Part shown: positions 6,509-36,969 of the stretch, piece by piece | Layout of the letters: every line of letters starts with the position of its first letter | How positions within the stretch are numbered: position 1 is the stretch's first letter | NCBI GenBank assembly: GCA_038087875.1 | Contig: JAXLNO010004250.1 | Location: 248,001-312,000 of the forward strand | Length of the DNA stretch: 64,000 nucleotides | DNA from: Malacoraja senta | Taxonomy: Eukaryota | Direction: 5' to 3' | Made by a program: the position numbers and the translations under genes | The notes under the pieces: model-generated | The model's database searches: none | Told to the model about the DNA's origin: nothing | The model's input: the letters and a program-made list of their open reading frames with translations, nothing else

Positions 6509-6512
6509 ACCC

Positions 6513-15230: not shown

Positions 15231-15565
15231 GTTTAAATGTTGTTTTTACAATAACTATTTTATTCCACCCGTTTGAACTCGCTACAACCCATTCATTCTC
15301 TCTACACATGCTGCCTGTCCCGCGGATTTACTCCAGCATTTTGTGTCTTCCTTTGGTGTAAACCTGCATCTGCATTTCCTTCCTACACACAACCTCGCCG
15401 TTGCCATTCCGTTCCAGGCTGTGTCACTCCCAGCCTGTGCCGAGGCAGCAGTCTGCATTGTCAGTAACCCTTGAACTTCCCAGTAAAATCCCAGTCTGAG
15501 GGGCCGACTACTGACATTCCCGGTGTAAACCCTGGTGTGAACTATGTGCCTCCAGAGGGACTCAC

Positions 15566-15904
15566 CTTCAACCTGCAGATGCAGCGCCTCCTGGTTACTG
15601 GACGTGGGGGTGCTGATGGAACACGTGTAGATTCCAGCATCTGATACTTTGACCCTCTTCAGTTTAAGCGATGCGTTTCCACGGGGAAACTCTTCCCGAA
15701 AGAGTTCCGTCCTCCCTCGATAAGCCCTGTCCTGCATCTCAGCTCGGTCCTGGCCGCCGGTGTATAAATGTACCGGTGACCCCGGGCTCGTTGTAAACCA
15801 TCGGACCTCCAGAGCGTCCAGTGATGTATCCGGACATTCCAACATGGCATCTTCACCCACCATGGCCACCACCGGACAGTCCGGCACAATCACATAGAAC
15901 TCCT
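15566..15904 (-). CDS. Butyrophilin-like gene A, IgV exon (339 bp, phase 1-1)
   Basis: Acceptor tattttatttttccag, donor G|gtgagt; EEFYVIVPDCPVVAMVGEDAMLEC-PDTSLDALEVRWF...QDRAYRGRTELFREEFPRGNASLKLKRVKVSDAGIYTCSIS...LHLQVE carries the BTN/MOG-type V-set motifs. Confidence 0.9.
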
Positions 15905-16232
15905 CTGGAAAAATAAAATATTTAAACTTGAGCTTTTTACGTTGGCGAGTTGTGTAACTTTTCGGGGGTCGGGTGGCAGTTAAGCAAAAGCAGGTACATT
16001 TCCATTTTAGGGTTGCTAATTCTTCCAAAAATCATATTAGAATAACGTCACAATCTCTGTCGCTCTAATGCTCCAAATTGGGGTTTGAACCCACGACCAT
16101 CTGACCCAGGACTTTGTTAACAGCGTCTCTACTGACAATCGGAACTCATCGCATAGATCGGCTGAGGCAGTGAAGTAGCACAATATTCACAGCAAGGTGT
16201 ATGATAGTCGCGTCGATAATCCCATTACCTAC

Positions 16233-16287
16233 CCATGGTCAACGCATGAACAAGCAACAGCACAAAGATGCAGCCTGCTCCCTTCAT
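16233..16287 (-). CDS. Butyrophilin-like gene A, signal-peptide exon (coding part; exon 16233-16316)
   Basis: Acceptor gttctgtttccag; ATG at 16287 gives MKGAGCIFVLLLVHALTM+G; phase-1 donor gtaggt joins the IgV exon in frame. Confidence 0.8.
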
Positions 16288-16790
16288 CGTTGAAAGAATT
16301 CCTTCCTTGGTTTCACCTGGAAACAGAACATCGAGATAATGTTTAAAGGGGAAGCACTACCACACTGAAAATAAGTCCATGAACTAATTCTACGAATTCT
16401 ATTTTAACGGGTAATATAAAATAAATTATTGGCAAAACGCCACTGGGTATAACTTCTGACAAATACAGAAGGCGTGTGTCCAACATTATGCATAAGTTCG
16501 AGGCTGATCGTTTTTACTAGTTTTCTCCTTAGTGTTTTATGTTTGTTTTTGCAAAATACTATTAAACGCTAGTGCAGTTTGCAAACTGCACTTCAGTTTC
16601 AGAAAATTCAGAACATTACACAACGTTAATGCAGGGAGTGGAGGGAGGTGGATTGTGTGACAACAGTTAAGCATTGGTCTCTGCATCGTGTTCGGCACAG
16701 ACATTGTGGGCCGAGGCTCACGTTCCTGTCTTGTTCTGTGTTCTATGTTCTATTGTGCACTGAGCCTAGCTGCAGAGAAATGGAGACGAG

Positions 16791-18243
16791 GACAATAGCA
16801 ATAGACAATAGGTGCAGGAGTAGGCCATTCGGCCCTTCGAGCCAGCACCGCCATTTAATGTGATCATGGCTGATCATCCCCAATCAGTACCCCGTTCCTG
16901 CATTCTCCACATATCCCCAGCATATGACAGTCCCGCCATCCCGGGAATTAACCTACGCTGCACTCCATCAATAGCAAGAATGTCCTTCCTCAAATTAGGG
17001 GACCAAAACTCCACACAGTACTCCAGGTGTGGTCTCACTAGGGCTCTGTAAAACTGCAGAATGACCTCTTTGCTCCTATATTCGTTTCCTCTTGTTATAA
17101 AGGCCAACATGCCATTCGCTTTCTTCACTGCCTGCTGTACCTGCATGCTTACTTTCATAGACTGATGAACAAGGACCCCCAGATCCCATTGTACTTCCCC
17201 CTTTCCCAACTTGATGCCATTTAGATAGTAATCTGCCTTCCTGTTTTTGATACCAAAGTGGATAACCTCACGCTTATCCACATTAAATTTCATCTGCCAT
17301 ACATCTGCCCACTCCCCCAACCTGTCCAAGTCACCCTGCATTCGCAGAGCATCCTCCTCACAGTTCACACTGCCACCCAGCTTTGTGTCATCTGCAAATG
17401 TGCTAATGTTACTTTGAATCCCTTCATCCAAATAATTGATGTGTATTGTAAATAGCTGCGGTCCCAGCACCGAGCCTTGCGTTACCCCACAAGTCACTGC
17501 CTGCCATTCTGAAAGGGACCCGTTAATCCCTACTCCTTGTTTCCTGTCTGCCAACCAATTTTCTATACATGTCAGCACGCTACCCCCAATATCATGTGCC
17601 CTAATTTTGCCCACTAATCTCCTATGTGGGACCTTATCAAATCCTTTCTGAAAGTCCGGGTGCACTACATCCACTGGCTCTCCCTTGTCCATTTTCCTAG
17701 TTACATCCTCAAAAAATTCCAGAAGATTTGTCAAGCATGATTTCCCCTTCGTAAATCCATGCTGACTCCGACCGACCCTGTTACTGCTATCCAAATGTGC
17801 AGCTATTTCATCTTTTATAATTGACTCGAGCATCTTCTCTACCACCGATGTCAGGCTAACTGGTCTATAATTCCCTGTTTTCTCTCTCCCAACTTTCTTA
17901 AAAATTGGGATTACATTAGCTACCCTCCAATCCACAGGAACTGATCCTGAGTCTAGAGAACATTGGAAAATTGTCAACAATGCATCCACGATTTCTAGAG
18001 CCACTTCCTTAAGTACCCTGGGATGCAGACCATCAGGCCCTGGGGATTTATCAGCCTTACATCCCATCAGTCTACCCAACACCATTTCCTTCCTAATGTG
18101 GATTTCCTTCAGCTCCTCCGTCACCCCAGATCCTCTGGCCACTACTATATCAGGAAGATTGTTTTTGTCCTCCTTAGTGAAGACGGATCCAAAGTACCTG
18201 TTCAACTCATCTGCCATTTCCTTGTTCCCCATCATAAATTCCC
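16791..18243 (-). mobile_element. CR1 LINE, 5'-truncated, with 453-aa open RT fragment
   Basis: ORF 16874-18235 with full CR1 RT motif set; internal deletion before the 3' UTR; (CTATTGT)n tail. Confidence 0.95.
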
Positions 18244-18589
18244 TGATAAAGATTCAGGCTAAGAGAACTGATAAAGATTCAGGCTAAAATCATAAAGGAA
18301 TCCAAAGGTCTGAACGAGATAAAAGGGAGTCCAAAGGGCTTTTACTGCACATTAACAATCGAAGGACTGTGGGGAGGCACTGAGACGACGAACAACCAAC
18401 GTTGGGAATAAGGTAGGGACATTTCTACACTTCTAACTTGTTTCCTATAACTGTGGCCATACTGCAACAAAACTGACCAATGTGAACATTAGAACAATCT
18501 GAAGTTGTGTGCAACTCTGTATTAATGCCATTTGGCGGAATAAACTGTCTCATGATGTGTCGTTAAAGAATCACCAAAACAGGAGAGTC

Positions 18590-19010
18590 GACAAAGAAGT
18601 CAGTGGATGTTATTTACTTGGATTATCAGAAGGATTTTGATAAGTTGCCACACGCGAGGCTGCTAAACAGGATTGGAGCTCCTGGTATTTGAAGCAAGGT
18701 TCCAGCATGGATAGTAGATTGGTTGACGGGCAGAAGCAACGAGTGAGAATAAAGGGGGGCATTTATGGTTGGCTGCTGGTGACCAGTGGTGTTCCACGGG
18801 GGTCGGTGTAGGGGCCGCTACTTTACACCTCATGTGTTAATCATCTGGATGGGAGAATTGGTGGCTTTGTGGACAATTTTTCAGACGATACGAAAAGAGG
18901 TGGAGGGGGCAGTTGTGTCGATGAAGCATGGAGGCTGCAGAATGAGGTGGACAGGTTGGGAGAGAGGGCAAAGAAGTGGAACATGGAATACAGCAGGTTG
19001 CTGTGTTTGA
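18590..19010 (+). mobile_element. Old degenerate CR1 RT fragment
   Basis: Decayed gtggatgttatttacttggat...tttgataagttgccacac...accagtggtgttccacggggg motifs. Confidence 0.6.
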
Positions 19011-19158
19011 CTGAGAGTTGATAGTCTAAAATATCTGTTTCCCGCCACGCCCTGGCACTGATAAGGACAAGCGCAGTGAACTGCTCAGAGACATCTTCTG
19101 AATCCCCCGATATCTCACGATCGATCTCTCCAGTCGGTTCCTGTTTAACTCCACTCAC

Positions 19159-19300
19159 CTTTCTCCAGCAGCCGATCCCCGCTGAGAGTCCAACCATCCC
19201 CAAAGTAGATTATGTTTGGGACTCGCGTCACACTTTGAATCTGACCGCGGATATCCCACCTCCCCACAATACGTGAGCACTTCCACGTCGGCTGCTGCTG
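19159..19300 (-). other. Candidate non-coding first exon of BTN-like gene A
   Basis: Strong donor AAAG|gtgagt at 19158-19153 in unique, CpG-containing sequence upstream of the signal exon; the 5' boundary is a guess. Confidence 0.4.
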
Positions 19301-19339
19301 AAAACGTTCACTGTTTCTGGAAGGACAGGTTGAGTGAAG

Positions 19340-20465
19340 GTGAGAATGCTGTTCATCGATTACAGCTCAGCATTCAACACCATCATACCCTCTAAACTGA
19401 TCACCAAACTCGGTGACCTGGGCATCGACCCCTCCCTCTGTAACTGGATACTGGACTTTCTGACCAACAGACCCCAGTCTGTTAGGTTAGACAAGCACAC
19501 CTCTTCAACCCTCACCCTGAACACCGGCGTTCCACAGGGCTGTGTGCTGAGCCCCCTCTACTCCCTCTTCACCTACGACTGCACACCTGCACATGGTACT
19601 TACACCATCATCAAGTATGCAGATGATACAACGGTGATTGGCCTCATCAGCAACAACGATGAGTCGGCCTATAGGGAGGAGGTCCAGCTCCTAGCAGCAT
19701 GGTGCGCTGACAACAACCTGGCTCTTAACTCCAAGAAGACCAAGGAGCTCATTGTAGACTTCAGGAAGTCTAGGGGCGGCACGCACACCGCCATCCACAT
19801 TAACGGGATGGAGGTGGAACGTGTTTCCAGCTTCAGGTTCCTGGGGGTCAACATCTCCAATGACCTCTGTTGGACCCACAATACCTCAACTCTGGTCAAG
19901 AAGGCTCACCAGCGTCTCTTCTTCCTGAGGAGACTAAAGAAGGTCCATCTGTCTCCTCAGATTCTGGTGAACTTCTACCGCTGCACCATCGAGAGCATCC
20001 TTACCAACTGTATCACAGTATGGTATGGCAACTGTCTCCGACAGGAAAGCAGTGCAGAGGGTGGTGAAAATTGCCCAACGCATCACCGGTTCCTCACTCC
20101 CCTCCATTGAGTCTGTCCAAAGCAAGCGTTGTCTGCGAAGGGCGCGCAGCATCGCCAAGGACTGCTCTCACCCCAACCACAGACTGTTTACCCTCCTACC
20201 ATCCGGGAGGCGCTACAGGTCTCTCCGTTGTTGGACCAGCAGGTCCAGGAACAGCTTCTTCCCTGCGGCTGTTACACTACTCAACACTGTACCTCGGTGA
20301 CTGCCAATCACCCCCCCCCCCCCCCCCGGACACTCCTCCCACCAGGATTTATTAGCTTTATTTATTGCTCATATTTATGTCGCTCTTCTAGGGAGATGCT
20401 AACTGCATTTCGTTGTCTCTGTACTGTACACTGCACAATGACAATAACGCTGAATCTGAATCTGA
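19340..20465 (+). mobile_element. Rex1/Babar LINE, 5'-truncated
   Basis: ORF 19334-20110 ([20 protein letters not shown]...[10 protein letters not shown]...IIKYADD); (CTGAAT)n tail. Confidence 0.92.
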
Positions 20466-20922
20466 GCTGCTCCAGATCGGTGGCGCTTTGCTGGTCCGTT
20501 ACTGGACCCTGGGAGGGGCAGCTCTGTTGTCCCAGTGGTAGAAGAAGGGCAACAAATGTCATTCTGTATAATCAGGTCACAACTACTCAAACCTGGACCG
20601 TACAATGGAACAGGGGAGGCGACCACCTGGACCAGGCGGTTATTCCGTGTTGACTCTACACTGCCCCCTGCGGCCAGGTGTGTGTTGGGATGGTCAGCCC
20701 TGGAGCTGCAAATCCCCTCGTTCCCTCCGCTTCTTTCACCAATGACCTCAGCCCGAGTCCTCCGCTCACGGCCCTCCGTCCACAGGGCCCACTTTCCCCT
20801 CCTTCACCGGGGCAACCCGTCCCCATTCTGAACCCCTCCATTCAAATCCTACCCCACCTCACCTTCCCCAGCTCACACACACACCTATCCCGGATCACAG
20901 AACAACCCCAGCCTCCCTGCTG

Positions 20923-21180
20923 GGCGGCACGGAGGCGCAGCGGTAGAGTTGGTGCTTCACAGCGCCAGAGACCCGGGTTCGATCCTGACGACAGGTGTTG
21001 TATGTATCGAGTTGTACGTTCTCCCGCGACCGCGTGGGTTTTGCCCGAGTGCTCCAGTTTTCTTCTATAATCCAAAGACGGCCAGGTTTGTAGATAAATT
21101 GGTGTCGGGGAAATTTGTAAAATTGTCCCTCGAGTGCAGGATCGTGCTGGTGTACAGGGTCATCTCTGGTCGTCGGGAGA
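20923..21180 (+). mobile_element. tRNA-derived SINE (HE1/V-SINE-like)
   Basis: A box (GGCGCAGCGGTAGAG) and B box (GGTTCGATCC) followed by the body cgttctcccgcgaccgcgtgggttt; related copies at 41.2, 61.6, 62.7 and 63.4 kb. Confidence 0.8.
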
Positions 21181-21342
21181 GAAACAAGAGCAAATGAGAG
21201 AATAGAGACCTGGGAGGCATCGTTCACTGTTTATTCCACTGGACAATATAATCTCACCCCCTGATTATTTTTTATTGTTCCGGCATCTTTTGGCTTCAGA
21301 ATCATTTTTTGTCCTTTGACAGGTTTGATGATGGGTGACTGA

Positions 21343-21543
21343 AGAAATTCCCGGGAGAAGGTTTGTCCTGGACCCGACCCCCGTGACAGGAGACTCAAGG
21401 AACAGATTCTAAAGGGAGCCGGGGTCTCGGTGCGGAGCCTGGAGTCCTTTGGCCACCGGTTGCCCTTGGCTACCCCGCACAAGGCGTGACTTTTCACCCG
21501 CACAAGGTGTGACCTTTCACCCCGCACAAGGTGTGACCTTTCA
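21343..21543. promoter_or_regulatory. Candidate shared regulatory region: NF-kB-like site and three 23-bp tandem units
   Basis: AGAAATTCCC at 21343-21352; units CCCGCACAAGGTGTGACCTTTCA at 21474, 21497 and 21521; units 2 and 3 contain AGGTGTGA (T-box) overlapping TGACCTTT (NBRE on the reverse strand). Function is inferred only. Confidence 0.35.
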
Positions 21544-21683
21544 CCCCCTGGTCAACAGTGAGGGGGTGGTCGACACCGGCAGCGGGGTCGGAGGGGAAGG
21601 GGGGGATCACAGCTTCCCGCCCATCACGGGTCTAACACTTCTCTCTCTCTCTCTCTCCCTCAGGCACTGACCCCTCCACTGGG

Positions 21684-21741
21684 ATGGGAATGGTTCACTG
21701 CGCTGTGTTGTTACTGCACGGGATCCTCAGCTCAGTCCACG
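21684..21741 (+). CDS. Butyrophilin-like gene B, signal-peptide exon (exon starts 21664)
   Basis: Long (CT)n tract and cag acceptor at 21661-21663; MGMVHCAVLLLHGILSSVH+G; in-frame joining to the IgV exon requires a GC donor at 21742-21743. Confidence 0.7.
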
Positions 21742-22139
21742 GCAATGACCACAACATCTGGTCTGATTTATATTTATTTATCTCATGGAGGAGGCTTCAT
21801 CGAGTCAGAAGATTCATATTTTAAAATCGCTCATTTTAATGCAGTTGTCCACATCACTTAATACGATCAGGTAGGAGTTTCTTCCTCCCTCTGTGGGCGA
21901 TGATGGGGTCTGCAGGAGTAGGAGGCAACTTCATTTTTCGTGGATAATCAGGATAGCAGGAAGCAGAGAGTGGGTGCCGATCGTTTTTCTCTCTGGGTGG
22001 CAAGATGTAAGGAGTGGTGTCCCACGGGGATTGGTGTTTGAGACCCCAACATTACATTAAAAATAAATCGTGAACAACCAGTGAAAATGTTCATATATTG
22101 TTTTCATCCCTGGATTATAAGGTTATAAGTGATAGGAGC

Positions 22140-23200
22140 AGATGAATGTCATTCCGCCCATCAAGTCTACTCCGCCATTCAATCATGGCTGATCTATCTC
22201 TCTCTCCCTAACCCCATTAGAGTCATAGAGTGACACAGTGTGGAAACAGGCCCTTTGGCCCAACTCGCCCACACTGGCCAACAATTTCCCCGCGGCACTA
22301 TTCCCACCTGCCTGCGCTTGGTCCATATCCCTCTAAACCTGTCCTATCCATGTACGTGTTAAACGATGGGGTAGTCCCAGCCTCAACAACCTCCTCTGGC
22401 AGCTTGTTTCATACACCCGGCACCCTTTGTGTGGAAACGTTGCCTCTCGGATTCCTATTAAATCTTTTCAATTAATTAAATCTATAAAATTTGATATCTA
22501 TTCAGCTATCTCTCCTTGGATCCCATGCGATCTAACCTTCCAGAGCAGCCTACCATGCAGAACCTTCTCGAACGCCTTATTGAAATCCATGTACACAACA
22601 TCTAGAGCTCTGCCTTCATCAACCTGCGTGGTCACGTCTTCAAAAAAGTCAACCAGATTTGTGAGACGTGCTCTCATGTACAAAACCGTGCTAACTGTCC
22701 CCAATCAGCCCTTGCCCATCCAAATGCTTGTATATCCTATCCCTCTACAGATGTTAAGCTCACCGGCCTATAGTTCCCAGCATTTTATCTGCAGCCCTTC
22801 TTGAAAAGAGGTACAACGTTTGCCATCCTCCAGTCTTCCGGCACCTCTCCTGATTTTATGGACGACTCGTAAATTACAATCAGGGCTCCCGCAATTTCCT
22901 CTCCAGTTTCCCACAATATCCTCGGATATATCAGATCATTCTCCTGCCTTCTTCCCATTACCCCTGACACCCGTACTAATCAAGAATCTCTGTCTGAAAA
23001 ATATCTATTGACTTGACCTCCAGAACCTTCTGTGGCAATGAATTCCACACATTCACCACCCTCTGCTTAAGAAATCCATCCTCAAACCCCTCCTAAATGA
23101 ATGTCCTTTAATTCTGAAGCTATGACCTCGAGTCGTAGACTCTCCCACTGGTGGAAACATCACAATACTCCAAATACGGCCAGACCTGCGCCTTATAGAG
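22140..23200 (-). mobile_element. Mosaic of CR1 fragments
   Basis: ORFs 22498-22704 (TNLVDFFEDVT...DVVYMDFNKAFEKVLH) and 22785-22970 (PEDWRMANVVPLFKKG) plus CR1 3' UTR pieces. Confidence 0.8.
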
Positions 23201-23368
23201 CCTCAGCATTACATTCCTGTTTTTGTATTCTAGCCCTCATGAAATAAATGCGATTGGTCTTTGTGCGTACAGAACGATGCAAACTTTACTAACATTAATT
23301 TTGTTTTCTATTTTTCTGTATTGATTCCTTAAATAATCGTGTTTTCACTGATTTGAATTGACACGCAG

Positions 23369-23716
23369 GTGAATTTGTCGTAATTGTACCGGGCAATGGT
23401 TTTGTAGCCACTGTAGGTTCAGATGTGGTGTTGGAATGTCAGCTTGTCCCAAATATATTGACCAGTAACATGGTCGTGCAGTGGAGGAAGTCAGGTCTCA
23501 CCTCGCCAGTCCTCGTGTACAGACAGCAACAAAATGAAGCCCTCGCTCAACACCAGGATTACAGAGCAAGGGCCGAACAGTTTAAAGATGAAGTTACCAA
23601 AGGGAACATTTTCCTCAGAATAAAGAATGTAAGAAGGTTTGATGAAGGGGAATATACATGTTCAGTTACAGAGGGAACCGAGTATGAAGCATCTCCAGCC
23701 CAACTGCGAGTTCGAG
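23369..23716 (+). CDS. Butyrophilin-like gene B, IgV exon (348 bp, phase 1-1)
   Basis: acacgcag acceptor, G|gtgagt donor; EFVVIVPGNGFVATVGSDVVLECQLVP...VQWRK...QDYRARAEQFKDEVTKGNIFLRIKNVRRFDEGEYTCSV...QLRVR; 348 bp is the typical BTN IgV exon size. Confidence 0.92.
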
Positions 23717-24054
23717 GTGAGTAAGTAAAATCATTGCTATTATTAACATTAAAGAAATGCGATTGTCTTTATAAATCGCTTCTCATGGTTTAAAGATAGA
23801 ATTGCTGTACCGTTGGCACAATATTCACAATATTTCAAGAGTCTTACACTTTCTCTGCTCCTAGGGGTGAGACAGTGAATTCCTCAGGATCAGGATATTG
23901 TATCCAGTGATAGTGGCTGGTTACACATGGAGTGCATGTGCAAAACACCGATTGTTGGACGATAAATGTAAAAATAACAGTTTGTTAAGGGCGTTCAATC
24001 AACAATGTTGATTTATAATTACATAATTACAAATGCTTTCAGAAAGCATTTGAT

Positions 24055-25216
24055 AATGTCCCACAGGAGATCAGTGGGCAAAATGTGGGCACATGGTATT
24101 GGCGGTAGAGTGCTCTACATGGATAGAAAATTGATTGGCAGACAGGAAACAAAGAGTAGGGATTAACGGGTCCCTTTCAGAATGGCAGGCAGCGACTAGT
24201 GGGGTACCGCAAGGCTCGGTGCTGGGACCGCAGCTATTTACAATATACATCAATGATTTTGATGAAGGGATTCAAGGTAACATTTGCAAATTTGCAGATG
24301 ACACAAAGCTGTGTGGTAGGGTGAACTGTGAGGAGGATGCTATGAGAATGCAGGGTGGCTTGGACAGGTTGGGTGAGTGGGCAAATGCATGGCAGATGCA
24401 GTTAATGTGGATAAATGAGAGGTTATCCACTTTGGTAGCAAAAACAGGAAGGCAGATTATTATCTAATGGTGTCAAGTTGGGAAAAGAGGAAGTACAAGC
24501 AGATCTGGGGGTCCTTGTTCATTAGTTAATGAAAGGAAGCATGCAGGCACAGCAGACAGTGAAGAAAGCGAATAAGAAGTTGGCCTTAATAAGAAGAGGA
24601 GTTGAGTAGAGGAGCAAAGAGGTCCTTCTGCAAGTGTATAGTGCCCTAGTGAGACCACACCTGGAGTATAGTGTGCAGTTTTGGTACCATTATTTGAGGA
24701 AAGACATTCCTGCTATTGAGGGAGTGCAGCGTAGGTTCACAAGGTTAATTCCCGGGATGGCAGGACTGTCATATGCTGAGAGAATAGAGCGGCTGGGCTT
24801 GTATACTCTGGAATTTAGAAGGTTGAGAGGGGATCTTATTGAAACATATAAGATTATTAAGGGTTTGGACACGCTAGAGGCAGGAAACATGTTCCCGATG
24901 TTGGGGGAGTCCAGAACCAGAGGCCACAGTTTAAGAATAAGGGGTAAGCTATTTAGAACAGAGATGAGGAGAAACTTTTTCACCCAGACAATTGTGAGTC
25001 TATGGAATTCTGTCTCAGAGGACGGTGGAGGCCGGTTCTCTGGATACTTTCAAGAGAGAGCTTGATAGGTCTCTGAAAGATAGCGGAGTCAAGGGATATG
25101 AGGAGAAGGCAGGAACGGGGTACTGATTGTGGATGATTAGCCATGATCACATTGAATGGCGATGCTGGCTCGAAGGGCCAAATGGCCTATTTCTGCACCT
25201 ATTGTCTATTGTCTAT
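24055..25216 (+). mobile_element. CR1 LINE, 5'-truncated
   Basis: ORFs 24135-24467 ([13 protein letters not shown]) and 24634-25065; (CTATTGT)n tail. Confidence 0.92.
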
Positions 25217-25350
25217 AATTAAGAACATGCTGTTGCAATGTTTATATTGAGAAGTAACTTGAGTAAATGGAGGGCAGCCATGGTAATGTGTTTCACCGGA
25301 GTTCCATCACAACTGTCCCAGAGTTTTTAATTGAGGGGAATGGAGAATGG

Positions 25351-27527
25351 ATTCAGATTCAACTTTATTGTCATTGTGCAGTGTACAGTACAGAGACAAC
25401 GAAATGCAGTTAGCATCTCCCTAGAAGAGCGACATAAATATGAGCAGTACATAAATCTAATAAATCCTGGTGGGAGGAGTGTCGGGGTGGTGGGGGGCGG
25501 GGGGCAGTGATTGGCAGTCACCAAGGTACAGTGTTGAATAGTGTAACAGCCGCAGGGAAGAAGCTGTTCCTGGACCTGCTGGTCCGGCAACGGAGAGACC
25601 TGTAGCGCCTCCCGGATGGTAGGAGGGTAAACAGTCTGTGGTTGGGGTGAGAGCAGTTCTTGGCGATGCTGAGCGCCCTTCGCAGACAACGCTTGCTTTG
25701 GACAGACTCAATGGAGGGGAGTGAGGAACCGGTGATGCGTTGGGCAATTTTCACCACCCTCTGCAGTGCTTTCCGGTCGGAGACAGAGCAGTTGCCATAC
25801 CATACTGTGATGCAGTTGGTAAGGATGCTCTCAATGGTGCAGCGGTAGAAGTTCACCAGAATCGGAGGAGACAGATACACCTTCTTTAGTCTCCTCAGGA
25901 AGAAGAGACGCTGGTGAGCCTTCTTGAACAGAGTTGAGGTATTGTGGGTCCAAGAAAGGTCATCGGAGATGTTGACCCCCAGGAACCTGAAGCTGGAAAC
26001 ACGTTCCACCTCCGTCCCGTTAATGTGGATGGGGGTGTGCGTGCTGCCCCTAGACTGCCTGAAGTCTACAATGAGCTCCTTGGTCTTCTTGGAGTTAAGG
26101 GCAAGGTTGTTGTCAGCACACCATGCTGCTAGGAGCTGGACCTCCTCCCTATAGGCCGACTCATCGTTGTTGCTGATGAGGCCAATCACCGTTGTATCAT
26201 CTGCATACTTGATGATGGTGTTAGTACCATGTACAGGTGTGCAGTCGTAGGTGAAGAGGAAGTAGAGGAGGGGGCTCAGCACACAGCCCTGTGGAACACC
26301 GGTGTTCAGGATGAGGGTTGAAGAGGTGTGCTTGTCTAACCTAACAGACTGGGGTCTGTTGGTTAGAAAGTCCAGTATCCAGTGGCAGAGGGAGGGGTCG
26401 ATGCCCAGGTCACCGAGTTTGGTGATCAGTTTAGAGGGTATGATGGTGTTGAATGCTGAGCTGTAATCGAGGAACAGCATTCTTACGTAAGTGTCTCTGT
26501 TGTCGAGGTGGGAGAGGGCGGAGTGAAGTGCCGTTGAGATGGCATCCTCCGTACTCCTGTTCTTGCGGTAGGCAAACTGATAGGGATCCAATGTGGGGGG
26601 TATGCAGCCTTTGAGGTGTGCCAGGACCAGCCTCTCGAAGCACTTGGTGATGGTGTGAGTAAGTGCAACTGGGCGGAAGTCGTTGAGGCTTGCCGCAGTG
26701 GAGTGTTTTGGCACTGGCACCATGGAGGTGGTTTTAAGGCACGTGGGCACAACTGCTTGGGCAAGTGACAGGTTGAAGATGTCAGTCCAGACGTCTGTCA
26801 GCTGCGCAGCACAGGCCCTGAGGACGCGCCCGGGGATGCCATCAGGGCCAGCAGCCTTACGTGCATTAGTCCTACTCAGTGCCACGTACAAGTCGTAGGG
26901 GGTGAGTGTGAGGGGCTGGCGATCGGATGGGAGCACCGCCTTGATGGCCATCTCTAGATTGTCCCTGTCAAAGCGGCCATAGAAGTGGTTAAGCTCCTCA
27001 AGGAAGGAGGCGTTGCTGGATGTGGTGTTGGTGGGTCTAAAGTCTGTGATGGCCTGGATGCCTTGCCACATGCGTCGGGGGTCGGAGTTGTTGTTGAAGT
27101 GCTCCTCAATCCTGAGCTTATGGCAGCTTGGCCTTCTTGACTGACCTGAAAGCGGTGTCCCATGCTAACTGTTCATCCATGGCTTCTGATTCGGGAATAT
27201 GGTCACCCGTTTGAGGGAGGTGACACTGTTGATGGTGGAGTTTATAAAGTCCAGAACAGAGGATGTATAGGAGTCAATGTCCGTGTGTGAGTCAAGGGTG
27301 GCCTGGGCTGCAAACGCCTTCCAGTCAGTGTTTCCAAAACACTGCTGAAGTGTGGAGTCCGCCTCCTCTGACCAGACTTTAACAGTCCTCACAGTCGGTT
27401 TAACCCGTCTGATGAGTGGGGAGTACTTTGGGAGCAGGAACAATGAGAGGTGATCAGACTGTCCAAGGTGGGGGAGGGGGACGGCTTTGTAAGCTTCAGC
27501 CATGTTAGTGTAGACTTTGTCCAGTGT
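25351..27527 (-). mobile_element. Rex1/Babar LINE, 5'-truncated, with 517-aa RT ORF
   Basis: ORF 25518-27071 ([36 protein letters not shown]) and upstream EN/linker ORF 27165-27548; close to the 19340-20465 copy. Confidence 0.95.
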
Positions 27528-28079
27528 CATGTTGGGAAGCCTCATCACAGTTGTACAGGACGTTGGTGAGACCTCACTTGGGGCACAGTGTACAGCCTCA
27601 TCACAGTTGTACAGGACGCTGGTGAGACCTCACATGGGGCACAGTGTACAGTCTTTGTCTGCCTACTGAAGGAAACGTGTACTCGCCATGGAGTTAGCAC
27701 GATGAATATCCCCTCGGTTGATTCCTGGGTGAAGGAGTCGTCTTGTGAGGAGGTTTACTGGTGTTGCTTGGGAGGGATTAATCCTGCGTGACAGGGGGTG
27801 GGGAGTGAACAACAGATCAGCAAGAGGAGGGATTGAGAGAAATATGGAGGTTGGGTGAAGTAAGTCTGGAACTAAGGTCGGGCAGGGCCAAGTTAATGAA
27901 CACGGTGGGGCTGAAATGCTGGTTTATTTATTTTGTTAAAGGCATATTATAGTAAGGCAGATGAACTTGGTGCATGAACCATAAGATTGTGGCCATGACA
28001 GAAACTTGTTCAAGACTTGGTGGAGAAAAGGGCAGGACTGCAATTCATCATTCCAGGTTTCAGATTTTCAGACATGATA

Positions 28080-28560
28080 GAGAGAGATGTAAAAGAGGCT
28101 GTGTGTTTCATTACTGATCAGGAAGAATGTCACTGAATTTCTTAATGAGGACATCCTGGAGGGTTCGTCTACTGAGGCAATATGGGAGAAAGTCAGGAAT
28201 AAGAAACGTGCAGTAGGATGATGAGGTTACAGCGTAGGAGTCGTTAAAGACAGGTATGTGGGTAGATTGTGGAAATATGTAAAAACAACAGATTGGTTGT
28301 AGAGGATTAATTTCCCCAATATTCACCGTGAGTGCCCTAGGGGCAAGGGTTTAGATGTGGCAGCATTTGACTGCATCCAGGAGGGTTTTCTGACACATTA
28401 TGCAGTTAATCTAACCCTGGATTGGACTATACTGGACATTGATTTGGGAAATGAGCGCAGCCAGGTGGAGTTTCAAAGGGAGAGCATGTTGACAACAGTG
28501 ATCACAATTCAATAAATGTTCAGCAAGTTGTGGAAGTGATAAGACTGGACCTCGATAATG
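28080..28560 (+). mobile_element. Old CR1 endonuclease-region fragment
   Basis: Degenerate gaggcaatatgggagaaagtcaggaataagaaa...ctggattggactatactgg...gtgatcacaattc motifs. Confidence 0.5.
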
Positions 28561-28607
28561 CTTAATTAGGAAAAGGCAATTTTCAACAGTAACAGGCTGG
28601 ACACAAA

Positions 28608-28805
28608 ATGTTGGAGTAACTCAGCGGGTCAGGCAGCATCTCTGGAGAGAAGGAATGGGTGACGTTTCACAGAGTGCTGGAGTAACTCAGCGGGTCAGGC
28701 AGTATCTCTGGAGAGAAGGAATGGGTGACGTTTCACAGAGTGCTAGAGTAACTCAGCGGGTCAGGCAGCATCTCTGGAGAGAAGGAATGGGTGACCCTTC
28801 TTCAG
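28608..28805 (-). repeat. Tandem triplication of a Penelope-SINE end segment (66-bp unit)
   Basis: gctggagtaactcagcgggtcaggcagcatctctggagagaaggaatgggtgacgtttcacaga repeated about 3 times. Confidence 0.85.
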
Positions 28806-29545
28806 TATCAGGCTGGAGTTGTGGAGAGTAGATTTCGAGAAGTCAATATCAGACTAATGAAGGTTGTTAAAGACCAGTAATCAGAATGCAGGAGCAACAT
28901 GTTATTGTGAGGAAGAAAGACAACGATGGATACATCTGAGAACTTGGATGACAAGACATGTTGCAAATTTGGTCAAATGGGAAATAAAGGAAGCATATGA
29001 AATGTTCAGGTCATCCCAAAGCTTCCTTGGCTCCTTGAGAATCTTTTCTGAACCCCTTTCAGCTTGAGGGCAGTCTTCCTCTGGTCAGGTGAGCAGAACT
29101 ATGGACAGTTTTCCATGTGATGCCTTGTACAGTTGGACCACAACATCCCGACTCTTGTCCTCAATGCCCTGACCGATGGAGGCAAGCATGACAAACACCT
29201 TCTTCACACTTTGTCGCTTGTTGTTGCTACTTCCAGTTAGCCATATACTCGGACCCCTTGATATCTCCGTTCCACCACACTCTCCAGGGCCCAGCCATTT
29301 ACTGTGTAACCCCCACCCTGGCTTAATTTACCAGGATGCTGAAAACATTCAGCAGGTCAGGCAGCATCTGGGGAGAGAGAAGCAGAGTTGACATTTCTGC
29401 TCAATGACTTTCCATTGGAACTAGAAATAATTAGAAATTGTGTAAGTATTGTTGCAAGAGGTTTGAGTACTTGAACAAAATGCTGTTTGGTCCAAGTTGC
29501 TATTCTTCCTGACTATTGTTATTTCTATATCTGTCAATGTTGCAG

Positions 29546-29827
29546 CTTTGGGGAGTTTGATCCGGATTCGGTTGCAGGGATACCAGGGAGATGGAATCCA
29601 GCTCGTGTGTAAGTCCGGTGGATGGTATCCTGGACCAGAGATGCTGTGGTTCGGTGAGGATGGACAGGTTTTACCACAAGCTGAAACAATGTACCATATA
29701 GATACGGAGGGTCTGTTAAATGTGGAGAGCAACGTGACAGTAATGAGGCGATCAACAAACAAGTTCAAGTGTGTTGTTCAATACACATGGTTAAACATAC
29801 AACGTGAGACAATTGTTAAAATATCAG
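29546..29827 (+). CDS. Butyrophilin-like gene B, IgC exon (282 bp, phase 1-1)
   Basis: tgttgcag acceptor, G|gtttgt donor; ALGSLIRIRLQGYQGDGIQLVCKSGGWYPGPEMLWFGEDG...NVESNVTV...FKCVVQ...ETIVKIS carries the BTN IgC motif CxSxGWYPxPxxxW. Confidence 0.92.
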
Positions 29828-30407
29828 GTTTGTAAATGTTTCTGTTTGATCATTGAAGTATAAAGGTGATTTACATTCCATTAAAACCCCGACTGCCCAG
29901 AATGCTCACTGAGGTGCTCACATGTTTCTCAGTGATACTTTATCCACATCTCACTTCTGTGGGGAAATGATCACTGATTTTTAAAGACGGTTTACTATAT
30001 GCTCCGATCCTGTTGCTTTGCTGCCTTTTAAATCTGTAACTGCATGAAAGGCCAACTGAGTCCACAACTTCTCCAACCAGGTTGGGCATTTGCACAAATA
30101 CTTTCAAATCCCTGACGCTCTTCTAAAGAGTCTTAAATGGACAAACCATGAGCACTCCCAGAGCATTGGCACGCACGGCCCTGTCACATTGACCACATGG
30201 GAACTATTGACACCACTAGGACTGGGATGAAGGTTCTACTGAAGGAGACGTCATGGTCCGATTACAAAGCAGAACCGTGAAAGAAACGGTGTGTGGATGA
30301 CTACCCGAGACCTGTGTAAATTGGCACCGGGCGAATGAGGTCATGTAGTTACCATATGTGTCCACAATCATTGTGGGAGAAATGAGTTCCAATTCCTGAG
30401 GTGGAAG

Positions 30408-31327
30408 TCAATAGAAAATAGGTGCAGGAGTAGGTCATTCAGCCCTTCAAGCCAGCACCACAATTCAATGTGATCATGGCTGATCATACCCAATCAGTAC
30501 CCCGTTCCTGCCTTCTCACCAAATCCCCTGACTCAGCTATTTTTGAGCCCTATCTTGAAAGCATCCAGAGAACCTGCCTCCACCGCCCTCTGAGGCAGAG
30601 AATTCCACAGACTCACCACTCTCTGTGATAAAAAGTGTTTCCTCGTCTCCGTTCTAAAAGGCTTACTCCTTATTCTTAAACTGTGGCCCCTGGTTCTGCA
30701 CTCCCCCAACATCGGGAACATGTTTCCTGCCTCTTGTGTGTCCAAGCCCTTAACAATCTTATATGTTTTAATGAGATATCCTCTCATCCTTCTAAACTCC
30801 AGAGTGTACAAGCCCAGCTGCTCCATTCTCTCAGCATATGACAGTCCCGCCATCCCGGGAATTAACCTTGTAAACCTACGCTGCACTCACTCAATAGCAA
30901 GAATGTCCTTCCTCAAATTAGGGGACCAAAACTGCACACAATACACCAGGTGTGGTCTCACTAGGGCTCTGTACAACAGAAGAAAGACCCCTTTGTTGCT
31001 ATATTCGATCCCTCTTGTTTTAAAGGTCAACATGCCATTCGCTTTCTTCATTGCCTGCTGTACCTGCATGCGAACTTTCATAGACTGATGTACAAGGACC
31101 CCCCCAGATCCCGTTGTACTTCCCCTTTTCCCAATTTGACGCCATTTAGATAGTAATCAGCCTTCCTGTTTTTGCTACCAAAGTGGATAACCACATTTAT
31201 CCGCATTAAACATCATCTGCCCACTCCCCGAACCTGTCCAAGTCACCCTGAATTCTCATAGCATCCTCCTCACAGTTCACACTGCCACCCAGCTTTGTGT
31301 CATCTGCAAATTTGCTGATGTAACTTT
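30408..31327 (-). mobile_element. CR1 LINE, 3' part (split by L1 insertion)
   Basis: ORFs 30533-30886 and 30887-31081 are the CR1 C-terminus; continues at 33465. Confidence 0.9.
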
Positions 31328-33464
31328 TTTTTTTTTTTTTGAAAATATTTTTTATTGGAGATAAGTACACAACCTATTAACATCATTACAGTCTTACATT
31401 TTTGAATTGATAATATTGTCAATTATTATTACATTGTCTCCAATACCTTTTGCCTTTTTTTTTTTTAAACTAGATAGAACTAAAAAGATAGATGAAGTAA
31501 AGAAAGAAAAGAGAGAGAAGAAAAAAAAAAAAAAAAAAAAGAGAAAGATAGTTAAAGAAGAATGGAAAAATTTATTAAAATAAAAAACTTAATTCGAGAT
31601 ATATTCGTACATTTCAGAGTATAGCATTTCATCCATTCTTTAGCCCGAGTGTTAGTCAGGTTCCTGTGCTGAACCATTCTGACCCTTTAAATAATCAATA
31701 AAGGGAGACCATGTTCCAACGAATAATTCCTGTTTGTCCAACAGGGAAAATCTGATTCTTTCCACGTTTAAGGTCTCCGTCATTTCTATAATCCACATTT
31801 TGATTGTGGGGGTTATAGGGCCTTTCCAAAATTTTAGAATTAATTTTTTTCCTGTTATTATACTATAATCAATAAAGTTTCTTTGTGTTGTTGTAAATGT
31901 TTGATTTAATTCTAATGTTCCGAGTATTATTAATTTTGGATCCGGGTCCAATTGTGTGCTGGTCACTTTAGATATACTAAAAATATTTACCCAGAATTTT
32001 TTAATTTTTATACAGTTTGCAAACATATGAAATAAGTTAGCTTCTAAATGTTGACATTTATCACATATAGGTGAGATATGTTGAAAGATTTTATGTAATT
32101 TTGTTTTTGAATAATGTAACCTATGTATTACTTTAAATTGTATTAAAGAATGTCTGGCATTTAATGAACATTGATGTATGTGTTGTAAACTTTCTTCCCA
32201 AGTATCTTTCATTATTATTTGATTTAATTCTTTTTCCCATGTTTGTCTGTGTAAGTCCGTCGATGGAATGTCACTGTCTAATAAGATATTATATATGTAA
32301 GATATTAATTTTTCTGTATTAGGATGTTTATTCCAACATTCGTCAAGAATTTCTGAATTTCTAATTCGAAAATTTTGAGTATTCGATTTTACATAATCTC
32401 TGAGTTGAAGATATCTGAAATAATCATTTCCTCGGAGTCCATAAGTCTGTTGCAACTCCTGAAATGTCAGAAAAGTGCCTTCCTTGTAAAGTTGTCCCAT
32501 ATTTTTAATTCCATAATTCTTCCATTGTGTAAAACCCCTGTCCAACCATGAGGGCTTAAACAAAGGGTTATTCACAATTGGAAGAAAAAGTGATAAATTA
32601 TCTAATTTTAATGTATTTTTTAATTGTTTCCAAATTCGTATAGCACTAAATATAGGGTTTTCCCTATAAATTTTTTTGTTTAATTTAGACGTAGCAAATA
32701 ATATCGAGCCGATATCAAAAGGTAAACAATCTTCCTTTTCCATTTTTAACCAATCTGGTTGTTGATCTATTTCTTCCAACCAGAAATTCATATTTTTAAT
32801 ATTAACTGCCCAAAAATAAAACAGAAAGTTGGGTAAAACCAAGCCTCCATTTATTTTTGATTTACACAAATGTCTTTTGTTTATCCTATGATTCTTATAA
32901 TCCCAGATAAAATCATTAATAATGGAATCCAATTTAAAAAAAAAGTTTTTTGACAAATATATCGGAATTGTCTGAAAAAGGTATAATATTTGCGGTAAAA
33001 AAAATCATTTTTATGGCATTAATTTTGGCAACCATTGAGATAGGAAGTGTTTTCCAGTATTGAATATTCTTACGTAGTTTGTTCAGTAATGGGGGAAAAT
33101 TTGCTTTAAATAATGATGTATATATCTTAGTTACATTAATACCTAGGTATTTAAATTTTTCATTTACTATTTTAAATGGAAATTGTTGTATTATCTGTTT
33201 GTTATGTTCCCTTATTGGCATAATTTCACTTTTATTCCAATTTATTCTGTATCCTGAGAGTGAACCAAATTGGGTTATTAGCTTTAATAAGTTTGGAATA
33301 CTAATTTCTGGTTTTGTAATGTAAATTAGTACATCATCAGCGTATAGAGAAATTTTATTCACTGTGTCCTTTGTGATATACCCATGTATTTCCGGATGAC
33401 CCCTAACTCTTTCTGCGAGTGGCTCAATAGCAAGCGCAAATAATAATGGAGATAACGGGCATCC
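31328..33464 (-). mobile_element. Second L1-clade LINE (different subfamily), 5'-truncated, with 15-bp TSD
   Basis: GCPLSPLLFALAIEPLAER...YADD (ORF 32934-33500) and ORF 31652-32956 with CDKC...HMFANC; poly(A) tail; TSD tgctgatgtaacttt (31313-31327) versus tgctaatgttacttt (33465-33479). Confidence 0.93.
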
Positions 33465-34010
33465 TGCTAATGTTACTTTGAATCCCTTCATCCAAATCAT
33501 TGATATATATTGTAAATAGCTGCGGTCCCATCACCGAGCCTTACGGTACCCCACTAGTCACTGCCTGCCATTCTGAAAGGGACCCATTAATCCCTACTCT
33601 TTGTTTCCTGTCTGCCAACCACTTCTCTATCCATGTCAGCACTCTACCCCCAATACCATGTGCCCTAATTTTGCCCACTAATCTTCTGAAAGTCCAGGTA
33701 CACTACTTCCACTGGCTCTCCCTTGTCCATTTTCCTAGTTACATCTTCAAAAATTCCAGAAGATTAGTCAAGCATGATTTCCCCTTCGTAAATCCATGCC
33801 GACTCGGACCGATCCTGTTACTGCTATCCAAATGTGCGGCTATCTCATCTTTTATAATTGACTCCAGCATCTTCCCCACCACCGATGTCAGGCTAACTGG
33901 TCCATAATTCCCTGTTTTCTCTCTCCCGCCTTTCTTAAAAAGTGGGATAACATTAGCTACCCTCCAATCTACAGGAACTGATCCTGAGTCTATAGAACAT
34001 TGTTAAATTA
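33465..34010 (-). mobile_element. CR1 LINE, 5' continuation
   Basis: ORF 33500-33907 on the opposite strand corresponds to CR1 RT (NYRPVSLTS...[14 protein letters not shown]). Confidence 0.88.
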
Positions 34011-34960
34011 TCTCCTCTCCCAGTGGAGGGGAGAGAGGAATTAGCTCCATTGGGTTGGGCTTCACTTGAATCACCCTGAGACCAGTGTCGGAGTGAATCA
34101 CATGACAGAGAATGTAGATGAAGCTTTGATCTGAATAGTTGTGGGGATGCGGTTTAAACAGAAGCGTTTACCTCCAACGTTGTCTTTTCACGACTAGTCC
34201 AAATTGAAGGCTCTCTGTCTAAGTCTACCAGGGTAACCCATGAATATCTAATTGCCCGTCACTTTAAACATCCATGCTCTGCCCGCTTAGAGAGCGAGGT
34301 TCCACATGTGCATGTCGGGATGCACCACATTGTAAACCACTGCTGCCATCCCATCGAAGGGAAGACCAACAATCTGTGGCGTTGTCCGGCATGGACCATA
34401 TTGGGGCAACATCTAGAACAAGTGGTTGGTTCGTTGCAACCATCCTGAAAACCCGTCCCAGCCTTTTTCTTAGATTAAATGTAATTTTGTTGCTCAGTGC
34501 CAGCGTTGGAACTCGTGCCTTTTCTCAGGCAGCTACAACCTAAACATCAGTGGCAGGGGAGAAGCCAACATTAGCTCCAACAGGCCTTTAGCAAACCCAA
34601 GCGCTGCCATTCCTGGATCTTCCAGTAAACCCTTACAAATTTCACGGCAGGATATATACCAATAAACATAGAGAGAGAGGGACAGTTAGATACCTGTTTA
34701 CATATCAGTATATATATACAGACACAAAATGCTGGAGTAACGCAGCGGGCGAGGCAGTATCTCTGGCTAGAAGGAATGGGCGACGTTTCGAGTCGAGACC
34801 CTCCTTCAGACTTCGGTCTGTTCTGAAGAGTTACTCCAGCATTTTCTGTCTCCCTTCAATCTAAACCAGCACCTGCAGTTATATATATATATATATGCTG
34901 ATACAGTATATATAGTGAGTTAAATACTGACATGTATACTGATATATACTGATATATATG

Positions 34961-35220
34961 NNNNNNNNNNNNNNNNNNNNNNNNNNNNNNNNNNNNNNNN
35001 NNNNNNNNNNNNNNNNNNNNNNNNNNNNNNNNNNNNNNNNNNNNNNNNNNNNNNNNNNNNNNNNNNNNNNNNNNNNNNNNNNNNNNNNNNNNNNNNNNNN
35101 NNNNNNNNNNNNNNNNNNNNNNNNNNNNNNNNNNNNNNNNNNNNNNNNNNNNNNNNNNNNNNNNNNNNNNNNNNNNNNNNNNNNNNNNNNNNNNNNNNNN
35201 NNNNNNNNNNNNNNNNNNNN
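34961..35220. other. N-run (260 nt) ending 13 nt upstream of the TM exon
   Basis: Directly visible; flanked by TA-rich microsatellite. Other N-runs: 38251-38393, 50364-50546, 56808-56939, 58129-58328. Confidence 1.
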
Positions 35221-35233
35221 CTTCACTCTGCAG

Positions 35234-35353
35234 ATTATATCTTCCCTAGAGTTCTTGACTGGGTCCTGCCGCTGGTCCTCACCATTTGTCTTCTTGTTGC
35301 CGCCCACTGTGCTGTGTTTTATTGGAACGTGAAACAAAACAGACGCATTAAAG
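35234..35353 (+). CDS. Butyrophilin-like gene B, transmembrane exon (120 bp, phase 1-1)
   Basis: ctctgcag acceptor, AAG|gtacgt donor; DYIFPRVLDWVLPLVLTICLLVAAHCAVFYWNVKQNRRIK is a BTN-like juxtamembrane segment (S-D-xx-FPR-xxxW), a hydrophobic span and a basic stop-transfer; in frame with the IgC exon. Confidence 0.88.
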
Positions 35354-35424
35354 GTACGTTAAACAACAGCGGAAGATGCAGGTCAGGAAATCCGGGCGGG
35401 ATTCTCCCAGATTCCCACTGTAAC

Positions 35425-35885
35425 TTCAGAATCAGAATGCTGTTTATTGTCATTTATACAAAGTTTCAAACAAAATTACGTTCTTGCAGACATAACAACA
35501 AAAATACAACAACACACAATTAACACAATTCCACATAAACATCCATCACAGTGAATCCCCAAACACTTCCTCACTGTGATGGAAGGCAAAAGTCCTTATC
35601 TCTTCCCTGTTCTCTGTTCTTATTCTTCTCCCGCAGTCAAACAGTCAAACTGCTGCATCGAGCTGATCGAGGCTCTACATGTTAGATGTTAGAGCCCCCG
35701 GCGGGCGATGGTAAGTCCCGCAGCCGTTTAAGCCGCGCCGGGCGATGTAAGGCCCGCTCCGGGTCGATTTAAACCCCTCGATTCGGGCAGGCGAAATTTG
35801 CCGTTGCGGGAGCTCCGAAAAGCGGTCTCCCACCAGGGACCTGCGAGCTCCCGATGTTACCGTCCACAGGGCCTGCAGCCGGAAA
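35425..35885 (-). mobile_element. Fragment of the same non-autonomous LINE-tail family as 1862-2824
   Basis: Shared aacatcca(c/t)cacagtga...cctcactgtgatgga(a)ggcaaa segment and tttattgtcatt tail. Confidence 0.6.
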
Positions 35886-36714
35886 AGGTGGAACACCAGA
35901 GCACTCTACGCGGGGCTTCGACCTTCCAGCGGTAACTGTTGCCTCTGGAGGGAGTATCAGTTTCCCGGGAGGTGGGGATAATGGGGTAAATGGGCAGATG
36001 TGACATCTGTGTGTGCATGAGGCGGTGCCGTGGGAGGAGATTTAACCGGACACAGAGTCACTTGGACTTGTCTCTGTTTCCTGTATTTGATCTCCACTGT
36101 GGAGAGATAGATCACAGATGAGGTGATCACTTGGATGAACATCTCTGTTCAGTTCCCCGTTGTCAACCTGAGGTTTCGCTCACTTGTCTCTTTCATTGCG
36201 TGTCCCGTCCCAGTGTGAGATCTCCCTCGCTCTCCTACACTGATCTACTGAGGCTGAGCAGCAGCTGGGGAACCGCCCGCCTTTGAATCCGGCATCTCGC
36301 AGCCTTCCACATTCAACATTGTCCTCAACCGTTTCACACAATGAGCACCATGTTCACATTTTCCTACAGCAACTGTTGGTCGTGGGTGAATCATTGAAAC
36401 GTCCCCGGATCCTCAGTGTATTTATTCACCTGATCCGTTCCTCGTCATTCTCCTCTCCTGCCCTTCACATGTTAGACATTTGTTTTCCCGCTACACTTGT
36501 CTCACACCTGTCACCATCTGACATTGTCCAGGCCTGATAAGACCCTGTCAACGTGAACCAGGAATTCCGTTCCTCTCTGCAGCTGCTTGACCCACGTGGA
36601 ACGTCCCTCATTGTTCTGCACTTATTTCTAGCCTTGTTTGGATTGACCTCTGACTCTGATAGTCATTGTCTCTGATGCTCATTGTTCAAATGTAACACTG
36701 GTTTCTCCTTCCAG

Positions 36715-36747
36715 AGCTGGAACGGCGCAAATCCATCGTAGAACATG
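36715..36747 (+). CDS. Butyrophilin-like gene B, cytoplasmic coiled-coil microexon (33 bp, phase 1-1)
   Basis: gtttctccttccag acceptor, ATG|gtaaga donor; (E)LERRKSIVEH in frame after the TM exon; short phase-1 cytoplasmic exons are typical of BTN/BG genes. Confidence 0.75.
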
Positions 36748-36969
36748 GTAAGAATTTAGTATTGAAACTAGACTAAGTGGGACATGTTGGGTCCCAGCTT
36801 CACACGGGAGTGCTGGTCCCCCAAAGCAATATTCCACCTCTCCATCAATTCCAATATTGCTGGCCAGTGTGGGGGGGGGGGGGGTTCTGGAGCGCTAGTA
36901 TGTGTTGTGGGTCAAAGGGACTTGTTTCCAGAGGGCTAGTATGGACATTGTGGGCCGAATGGATTCTTG

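Follow-up and report, generated by a model that had tools for sequence, protein, structure and literature searches.

Two butyrophilin (BTN)-like genes, which we call gene A and gene B, lie on opposite strands of a 64,000-nucleotide stretch of the genome of the skate Malacoraja senta (contig JAXLNO010004250.1, positions 248,001 to 312,000; hereafter the window). Gene A occupies the minus strand and gene B the plus strand, so that the two point away from each other, with their ATG codons 5,396 bp apart (Table 1). A preliminary description of this stretch had placed here a head-to-head pair of butyrophilin-like genes around a shared upstream region and had proposed that they constitute a co-regulated heterodimer module. 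The divergent orientation and the exons it assigned (signal and IgV exons for gene A; signal, IgV, IgC, transmembrane (TM) and microexon for gene B) hold up well. The gene A exons are open, are flanked by splice sites and yield a V-set domain; those of gene B are open as well, and when spliced in silico they give an uninterrupted product of 269 amino acids. All seven coding exons of the two genes are phase 1, with one domain per exon. The leader peptide of gene B is identical to that of the L. erinacea protein P0267, its IgV exon is 70% identical to the sawfish protein P0039, its IgC domain scores 78 bits against Pfam C2-set_3 (PF22705, a BTN3A2-like Ig-C domain), its TM exon is 76% identical to residues 229–269 of the sawfish protein P0039, and its juxtamembrane microexon matches the ELELRKSIVE or ELERRKSIVE segment of relatives. 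The coding sequence of gene A begins with the ATG at 16287; its hydrophobic leader, 18 codons and one further base in length, is 89% identical at the amino acid level to its L. erinacea counterpart, and the IgV exon that follows scores 52.6 bits against Pfam V-set. Because an AG acceptor (16318–16317) sits 30 nt upstream of this ATG, gene A likely has an additional exon of 5′ untranslated region (UTR) upstream of the leader exon.

Table 1 Features of the butyrophilin-like locus in the window (ORF, open reading frame; CDS, coding sequence; the slash in a motif marks the exon–intron boundary).
Feature	Position	Strand	Details
Gene A IgV exon (A-type butyrophilin)	15566..15904	-	339 nt, phase 1-1, AG acceptor, GT donor
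Gene A leader exon	16233..16316	-	CDS 16287-16233; GT donor after 16233; phase 1
Non-LTR (CR1-like) retrotransposon fragment	16799..18260	-	ORF 16874-18235; RVT_1 100 bits; DNA depth up to millions
Donor-like motif AAG/GTGAGT	19158..19159	-	Motif only; in repeated DNA
Non-LTR (Rex/CR1-like) retrotransposon fragment	19334..20579	+	ORF 19334-20110; RVT_1 and ALKBH8_N; DNA depth 5,000-80,000
High-copy SINE-like repeat	20780..21179	.	DNA depth 80,000-300,000; directly upstream of gene B 5′ region
Gene B single-copy 5′ region	21180..21664	+	TATA-like motif, RNA-contig stretch, three tandem units, acceptor
Gene B leader exon	21665..21741	+	CDS from ATG 21684; phase 1
Gene B IgV exon	23369..23716	+	348 nt, phase 1-1; Pfam V-set
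Gene B IgC exon	29546..29827	+	282 nt, phase 1-1; Pfam C2-set_3
Inserted transposon sequence plus assembly gap	30012..35220	.	About 5.2 kb in gene B IgC-TM intron; alignment, collinearity
Gene B TM exon	35234..35353	+	120 nt, phase 1-1
Gene B juxtamembrane cytoplasmic microexon (ELERRKSIVEH)	36715..36747	+	33 nt, phase 1-1

Both genes are of butyrophilin type, as had been proposed. In a search against solved structures, the best matches of the two IgV domains and of the gene B IgC domain were BTN3A, BTN2A1, BTN1A1, BTNL2/3/8 and MOG (specifically BTNL8, MOG and BTN for the gene A IgV; BTNL2, MOG and BTN1A1 for the gene B IgV; and BTN3A2 and BTN3A1, as well as BTN2A1, for the IgC), and the single-V CD276, VTCN1, SKINT1 and PD-L1 scored below these BTN, BTNL and MOG structures. 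CD276 (B7-H3) was tried as the nearest relative of gene A and rejected: its score of 118 bits adds up two V domains, and single-V CD276 reaches 60.5 bits versus 75.6 bits for BTNL8. Of the features of the family, gene B displays a BTN-type IgV, a C2-set_3 IgC and a single TM segment with a short heptad-type cytoplasmic exon; gene A, within the window, is without the IgC, TM and cytoplasmic features.

Homologues were sought with a stop-free ORF, by a library-wide HMMER search and with a sawfish orthologue as the query. The proteins closest to gene B are A. radiata P0228 (87% identity) and L. erinacea P0267 (85.5%), followed by those of Rhinoraja longicauda (76–80%) and sawfish P0039 (70%). NCBI names these closest proteins "butyrophilin subfamily 1/3 member A-like", and most carry the PRY/SPRY (B30.2) domain. 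For the leader and IgV of gene A, identity is 81% to A. radiata P0181, 80% to the complementary DNA (cDNA)-derived P0002 and 78% to L. erinacea P0003; outside the skates it is 66% to sawfish P0237 and 54–60% to shark proteins. The two IgV domains share 39% identity with each other and fall into separate clades of an IgV tree (79 sequences, 116 columns, assembled without mammalian and B7 sequences), in keeping with the earlier view that neither is a recent copy of the other. The clade of gene A (A-type) comprises 12 shark and 8 batoid sequences with a Shimodaira–Hasegawa-like approximate likelihood ratio test (SH-aLRT) support of 95, and the batoid clade of gene B (B-type; SH-aLRT 99) has a shark clade as its sister. 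Since both types thus include sharks and batoids, the A and B lineages split before sharks and rays did, and on the evidence of this tree genes A and B are two BTN lineages older than that divergence.

The exon plan of gene B is the same as that of the elasmobranch B-type BTNs (Pristis pectinata XP_051899586, that is P0039, "butyrophilin subfamily 3 member A3-like"; A. radiata P0228 and P0257; L. erinacea P0267), to which it is 84–87% identical among skates. Gene A groups likewise with the A-type BTNs, shark members included (sawfish P0237, "butyrophilin subfamily 1 member A1-like"; A. radiata P0181; P0002; L. erinacea P0003). We regard genes A and B as unexceptional representatives, within a transposon-rich cluster, of a family that is both known and annotated. 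NCBI annotation of BTN genes with PRY/SPRY extends across the elasmobranchs, and the family has been traced to the base of the gnathostomes (PMC13262535), so that their presence here will not surprise a specialist. Our literature searches turned up no work on BTN pairs in skates or sharks.

Three features make this copy of gene B look decayed and set it apart from its B-type relatives: the donor of its leader exon, an insertion ahead of its TM exon, and the lack of a B30.2 exon. The leader donor (21742–21743) is GC (CACG/GCAATG) in the window and GT (G/GTAATG) in L. erinacea and sawfish; position 21741 is the only in-frame (phase 1) end for this exon, no other GT yielding phase 1. The GC dinucleotide may mark an intron that still works as GC-AG or one that the change has disabled; it may also be polymorphic or an erroneous base. 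Farther downstream, the IgC–TM intron contains one of the five assembly gaps of the window (34961–35220), which stops 13 nt short of the TM acceptor; the entire TM exon, along with its acceptor (CTTCACTCTGCAG, 35221–35233), is to the right of the gap, and the phase is unchanged (1 to 1). This intron measures about 198 nt in A. radiata (locus L008) and L. erinacea (locus L005). In the window, homology to this short intron is lost near 30012 and picks up again at precisely 35221, so that about 5.2 kb of transposon sequence plus the gap stand 13 nt upstream of the acceptor, and the branch-point region that the intron originally had is 5.2 kb distant from it. Finally, neither a B30.2 exon nor any further cytoplasmic exon of gene B was found up to position 64,000, 27 kb past the microexon, and no B30.2-like exon was detected on either strand of the window, the gaps and the DNA past the window lying outside the search. 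In comparison, P0039 and A. radiata L008 have a PRY/SPRY exon, which in L008 follows the microexon by about 6.8 kb; for the L. erinacea copy, B′, no B30.2 exon was found in the 13 kb after the TM exon. B30.2 is present in most BTN members and not in all, BTN3A2 and BTNL2 being without it. Its lack would not by itself disable gene B, because short-tailed relatives exist (P0267 and P0214; P0002 for the A-type). We note that 37750–39800, roughly where relatives would carry the remaining cytoplasmic exons, is a long run of short tandem repeats with repetitive pseudo-ORFs of 400 amino acids, situated around another gap (38251–38393).

Gene A is present in the window as a leader and an IgV exon, and to this extent the preliminary description stands; a whole gene is not there. 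Queried by tblastn with A-type proteins and the translations of the exons of A′, the L. erinacea counterpart of gene A, positions 1–15565 gave no minus-strand match to an IgC, TM or B30.2 exon. The only IgC and TM matches that these queries gave in the window are those of gene B, and the region downstream of gene A within the window holds transposon material only. A-type relatives, in contrast, carry IgC, TM and usually B30.2 exons: in A′ these follow the IgV exon at 4.4, 6.2 and 10.5 kb, respectively, and the IgV–IgC introns of relatives span 0.4–8 kb, that of the sawfish being about 0.4 kb. A stretch at 15287–15452 that might have anchored the gene A IgC intron was rejected, as it is itself a repeat. 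The IgV domain of gene A differs from that of all relatives in being without three residues (QKV or QKA in the relatives) immediately after the first cysteine, and in the read-contig alignment a 9-nt indel falls at 15832 within the exon.

Two observations in other skates touch on the A-type genes. In the A-type gene of L. erinacea, the alignment of the B30.2 exon (L001:20858–21369) is divided between two reading frames; a frameshift is implied, in agreement with the short-tailed A-type cDNA form. The A. radiata P0181 model (CM021395.1, spanning a range of 337 kb) has three A-type IgV domains in a row, followed by IgC, TM and B30.2, and the sequence suggests that several stand-alone A-type IgV exons, resembling the gene A fragment of the window, are scattered over the A. 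radiata cluster.

The head-to-head arrangement extends beyond M. senta. Positions 15438–36767 of the window are collinear, at 87–93% identity, with L. erinacea contig JAMYXN010000515.1, the differences being transposon insertions, and in that contig A′ (minus) and B′ (plus) again lie head to head, with their ATGs approximately 15.1 kb apart. This collinearity indicates that the head-to-head unit was inherited and is either orthologous or a large segmental duplicate. A. radiata L008, a B-type locus, is collinear with 21309–36767 at 88–93% identity and has no A-type exon upstream; in the A. radiata locus L002, neighbouring BTN genes are in tandem. Within 10-kb flanks we found no divergent partner at the sawfish (L004 and L006), zebra shark (L007) or A. 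radiata L008 loci. The fetched A-type and B-type genes of the sawfish lie on one chromosome at 1.88 Mb and 15.8 Mb, about 14 Mb apart, with no divergent Ig exon in the 10-kb flank upstream of either, and the zebra shark A-type gene has a tandem neighbour only. As regards other species, then, the layout recurs in L. erinacea and was not seen within the 10-kb flanks of the sawfish, zebra shark and A. radiata loci.

The interval between the two ATGs, in which the preliminary description named a Rex LINE (long interspersed element) and a SINE (short interspersed element), is filled for the most part by reverse transcriptase fragments and high-copy DNA. In DNA contigs from the same species as the window (X16), which match its single-copy parts almost perfectly, single-copy depth (5–20) is confined to 15780–16579, 18380–18579, 20580–20779 and 21180–21779, the depth elsewhere being hundreds to millions. 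A second copy of the non-LTR element at 19334–20300 (plus strand) occurs on the minus strand at 25518–27071, within the IgV–IgC intron of gene B. The earlier claim that the 5′ ends of the genes are 2.3–2.5 kb apart, with less than 1 kb of unique DNA separating them, depended on the motif at 19158 being a UTR donor of gene A, and we do not find support for any of these three propositions. Although good as a donor sequence, the motif lies in repeated DNA (depth about 200 in its own bin and about 5,500 in the next) and outside the block common with L. erinacea, which ends at 19083, and it has no specific RNA support. No closely spaced start sites were found, nor is there a CpG island between the genes: the CpG observed/expected ratio is 0.2–0.8 across 16.6–21.0 kb, and the sole bin between the ATGs that exceeds 1 away from the gene A leader (21000–21199) falls almost wholly inside the SINE-like repeat. 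The ratio is 0.75–1.04 over 15600–16600 (the gene A exons and intron 1), versus 0.50 for the whole window.

The 5′ region of gene B begins near 21.2–21.3 kb, and it is conserved in L. erinacea over 21177–21478 and in A. radiata L008 from 21309. It contains a TATA-like string, ATATAAT, at 21246–21252 (first pointed out by a bacterial promoter/terminator scan, which is not itself meaningful for a vertebrate), and a polypyrimidine-CAG acceptor that ends at 21664, just before the ATG, and is conserved from skate to sawfish, which implies an upstream UTR exon. At 21476–21545 the region also contains three tandem 24-nt units (…CGCACAAGGTGTGACCTTTCACC…), each with a donor-like CAAG/GTGTGA (GCGTGA in the first copy), and 21484 is also the end point of an RNA contig from a related skate.

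RNA evidence at the locus comes from contigs of three runs of other organisms (X10, X22 and X7), aligned to the window at a likeness of at least 85%; the run searches returned the DNA-like X16 and X18 and, for RNA, runs of other organisms with 4–12% of words in common with the window. Such contigs concern homologues of genes A and B rather than the window locus itself, and they are informative at the level of depth, being swamped by repeats and giving no usable joints. They cover 21180–21779, where an X22 contig aligns to 21320–21484 and X10 contigs span at least 21269–21391, and the beginning of the gene A IgV exon is likewise covered; over gene A intron 1 and the leader exon their depth is zero. 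The X10 contig over the gene A IgV is without the 9-nt insert that marks paralogues, and the X22 contig has it.

We think it probable that the window holds one unit of a multi-copy skate BTN cluster in which gene B looks decayed and gene A is a 5′ fragment. Gene B is a B-type BTN with leader, IgV, IgC, TM and first cytoplasmic exon, in a copy that shows the changes described above. Gene A would be no more than the 5′ part of an A-type BTN gene, with leader and IgV; the other exons would either have disappeared or have been moved by transposon insertions to a distance of more than 15 kb. The inherited head-to-head layout would reflect a duplication or inversion in a gene cluster with fast turnover rather than a dedicated bidirectional promoter; gene A appears to be non-functional here, and genes A and B would be transcribed independently of one another. 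Several points weigh against this interpretation. GC donors can function, and apart from that donor all of the observed exons of both genes are open and have usable splice sites. The ratio of nonsynonymous to synonymous substitution rates (0.6–1.1 among the B copies and 0.76–2.7 for the gene A IgV) is high throughout the family and thus cannot separate decay from diversifying selection. The missing exons of gene A could lie beyond the start of the window, our run searches found no RNA runs from the window's own species, and the X10 contig without the insert may mean that a gene-A-like copy is transcribed somewhere.

An alternative, which we regard as unlikely, is that the two genes are intact and functional, their introns being long and swollen by transposons and their promoters separate. 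The IgC, TM and B30.2 exons of gene A would then lie beyond the window start, and the B30.2 exon of gene B beyond the window end, unless gene B dispenses with it in the manner of the short forms BTN3A2 and BTNL2. The open reading frames and consistent phases are what this alternative would lead one to expect, short-tailed relatives do exist (the P0002 cDNA, a 1,013-bp Logan contig, and the gene models P0267 and P0214), and RNA contigs of relatives cover both the gene B 5′ region and the gene A IgV exon. However, it would require the gene A IgV–IgC intron to exceed 15.5 kb, as compared with at most 8 kb in relatives, and it has to accommodate the GC donor of gene B, a branch-point region displaced by 5.2 kb and the zero RNA depth on the gene A leader exon. 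A different possibility is that what is seen here is in part an assembly artefact, with a false join at the 34961–35220 gap or elsewhere that stitched together exons of different B-type copies or cut gene A from its own 3′ exons. The resumption of homology at precisely the first base after the gap, the five gaps in the window and the existence of several paralogues that are about 90% identical are all compatible with such an error, yet we consider it quite improbable: exon order, phases and identity are consistent across the gap (92–93% to A. radiata L008 on both sides), the exon order is collinear with the L. erinacea and A. radiata copies, and DNA contigs of the same species match the single-copy parts of 15.8–21.8 kb almost perfectly.

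The heterodimer module of the preliminary description, in which genes A and B are co-regulated from a shared upstream region and their products form a heteromer that engages gamma-delta T cells, strikes us as very doubtful. In its favour, two old clades have both been kept in sharks and rays, recalling BTN2A and BTN3A; the head-to-head layout is common to two skate assemblies; and RNA runs X10 and X22 contain both A-type IgV and B-type 5′ sequences. The mammalian heteromer pairs (BTN2A1–BTN3A1, BTNL3–BTNL8 and Btnl1–Btnl6) belong by sequence to the same protein superfamily, and there too two diverged members stand side by side. But in the skate the gene A partner is incomplete within the window and gene B looks damaged. 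Moreover, the partner genes of mammalian BTN/BTNL pairs are tandem neighbours rather than divergent ones, and the wide separation of the two fetched sawfish genes and the lack of a divergent partner within 10 kb at the sawfish, zebra shark and A. radiata L008 loci also count against the module. Like bidirectional promoter pairs, the skate genes are on opposite strands with their 5′ ends facing; they differ in that 5.4 kb separates the ATGs (in L. erinacea, 15 kb), across an interval that is mostly transposon, has no CpG island and includes a proposed UTR donor without support. A broader form of the idea is that the A-type and B-type clades might be ancient heteromer partners like BTN2A1 and BTN3A1, with skates keeping head-to-head units of which the window is one, possibly decaying; this we hold to be a long shot. 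Were such pairing real, it would take BTN heteromer biology, and with it germline-encoded selection of gamma-delta T cells, back to the base of the jawed vertebrates.

Taken together, the evidence shows that skates have an expanded, transposon-riddled BTN cluster drawn from two old clades, with a head-to-head A/B unit that is common to at least two skate assemblies and whose copy in the window is incomplete or damaged. These results can help in the annotation of the cluster and in the choice of copies, where Rhinoraja and Pristis, with their complete B-type genes, and the A-type cDNA, which is expressed, offer better candidates.

Two further features lie downstream of gene A. An ORF at 14683–15009 (plus strand), directly downstream of the gene A IgV exon, has no Pfam match at E ≤ 0.001 and contains what we take to be a GIY-YIG-like motif as carried by Penelope-type retroelements. 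At 7089–7186 (plus strand), on the strand opposite to gene A, the window matches the 3′ end (tail and 3′ UTR) of the A-type cDNA contig (L003:907–1013) at 86% identity, a match that may represent a repeat-derived terminal exon or the chimeric end of a contig.

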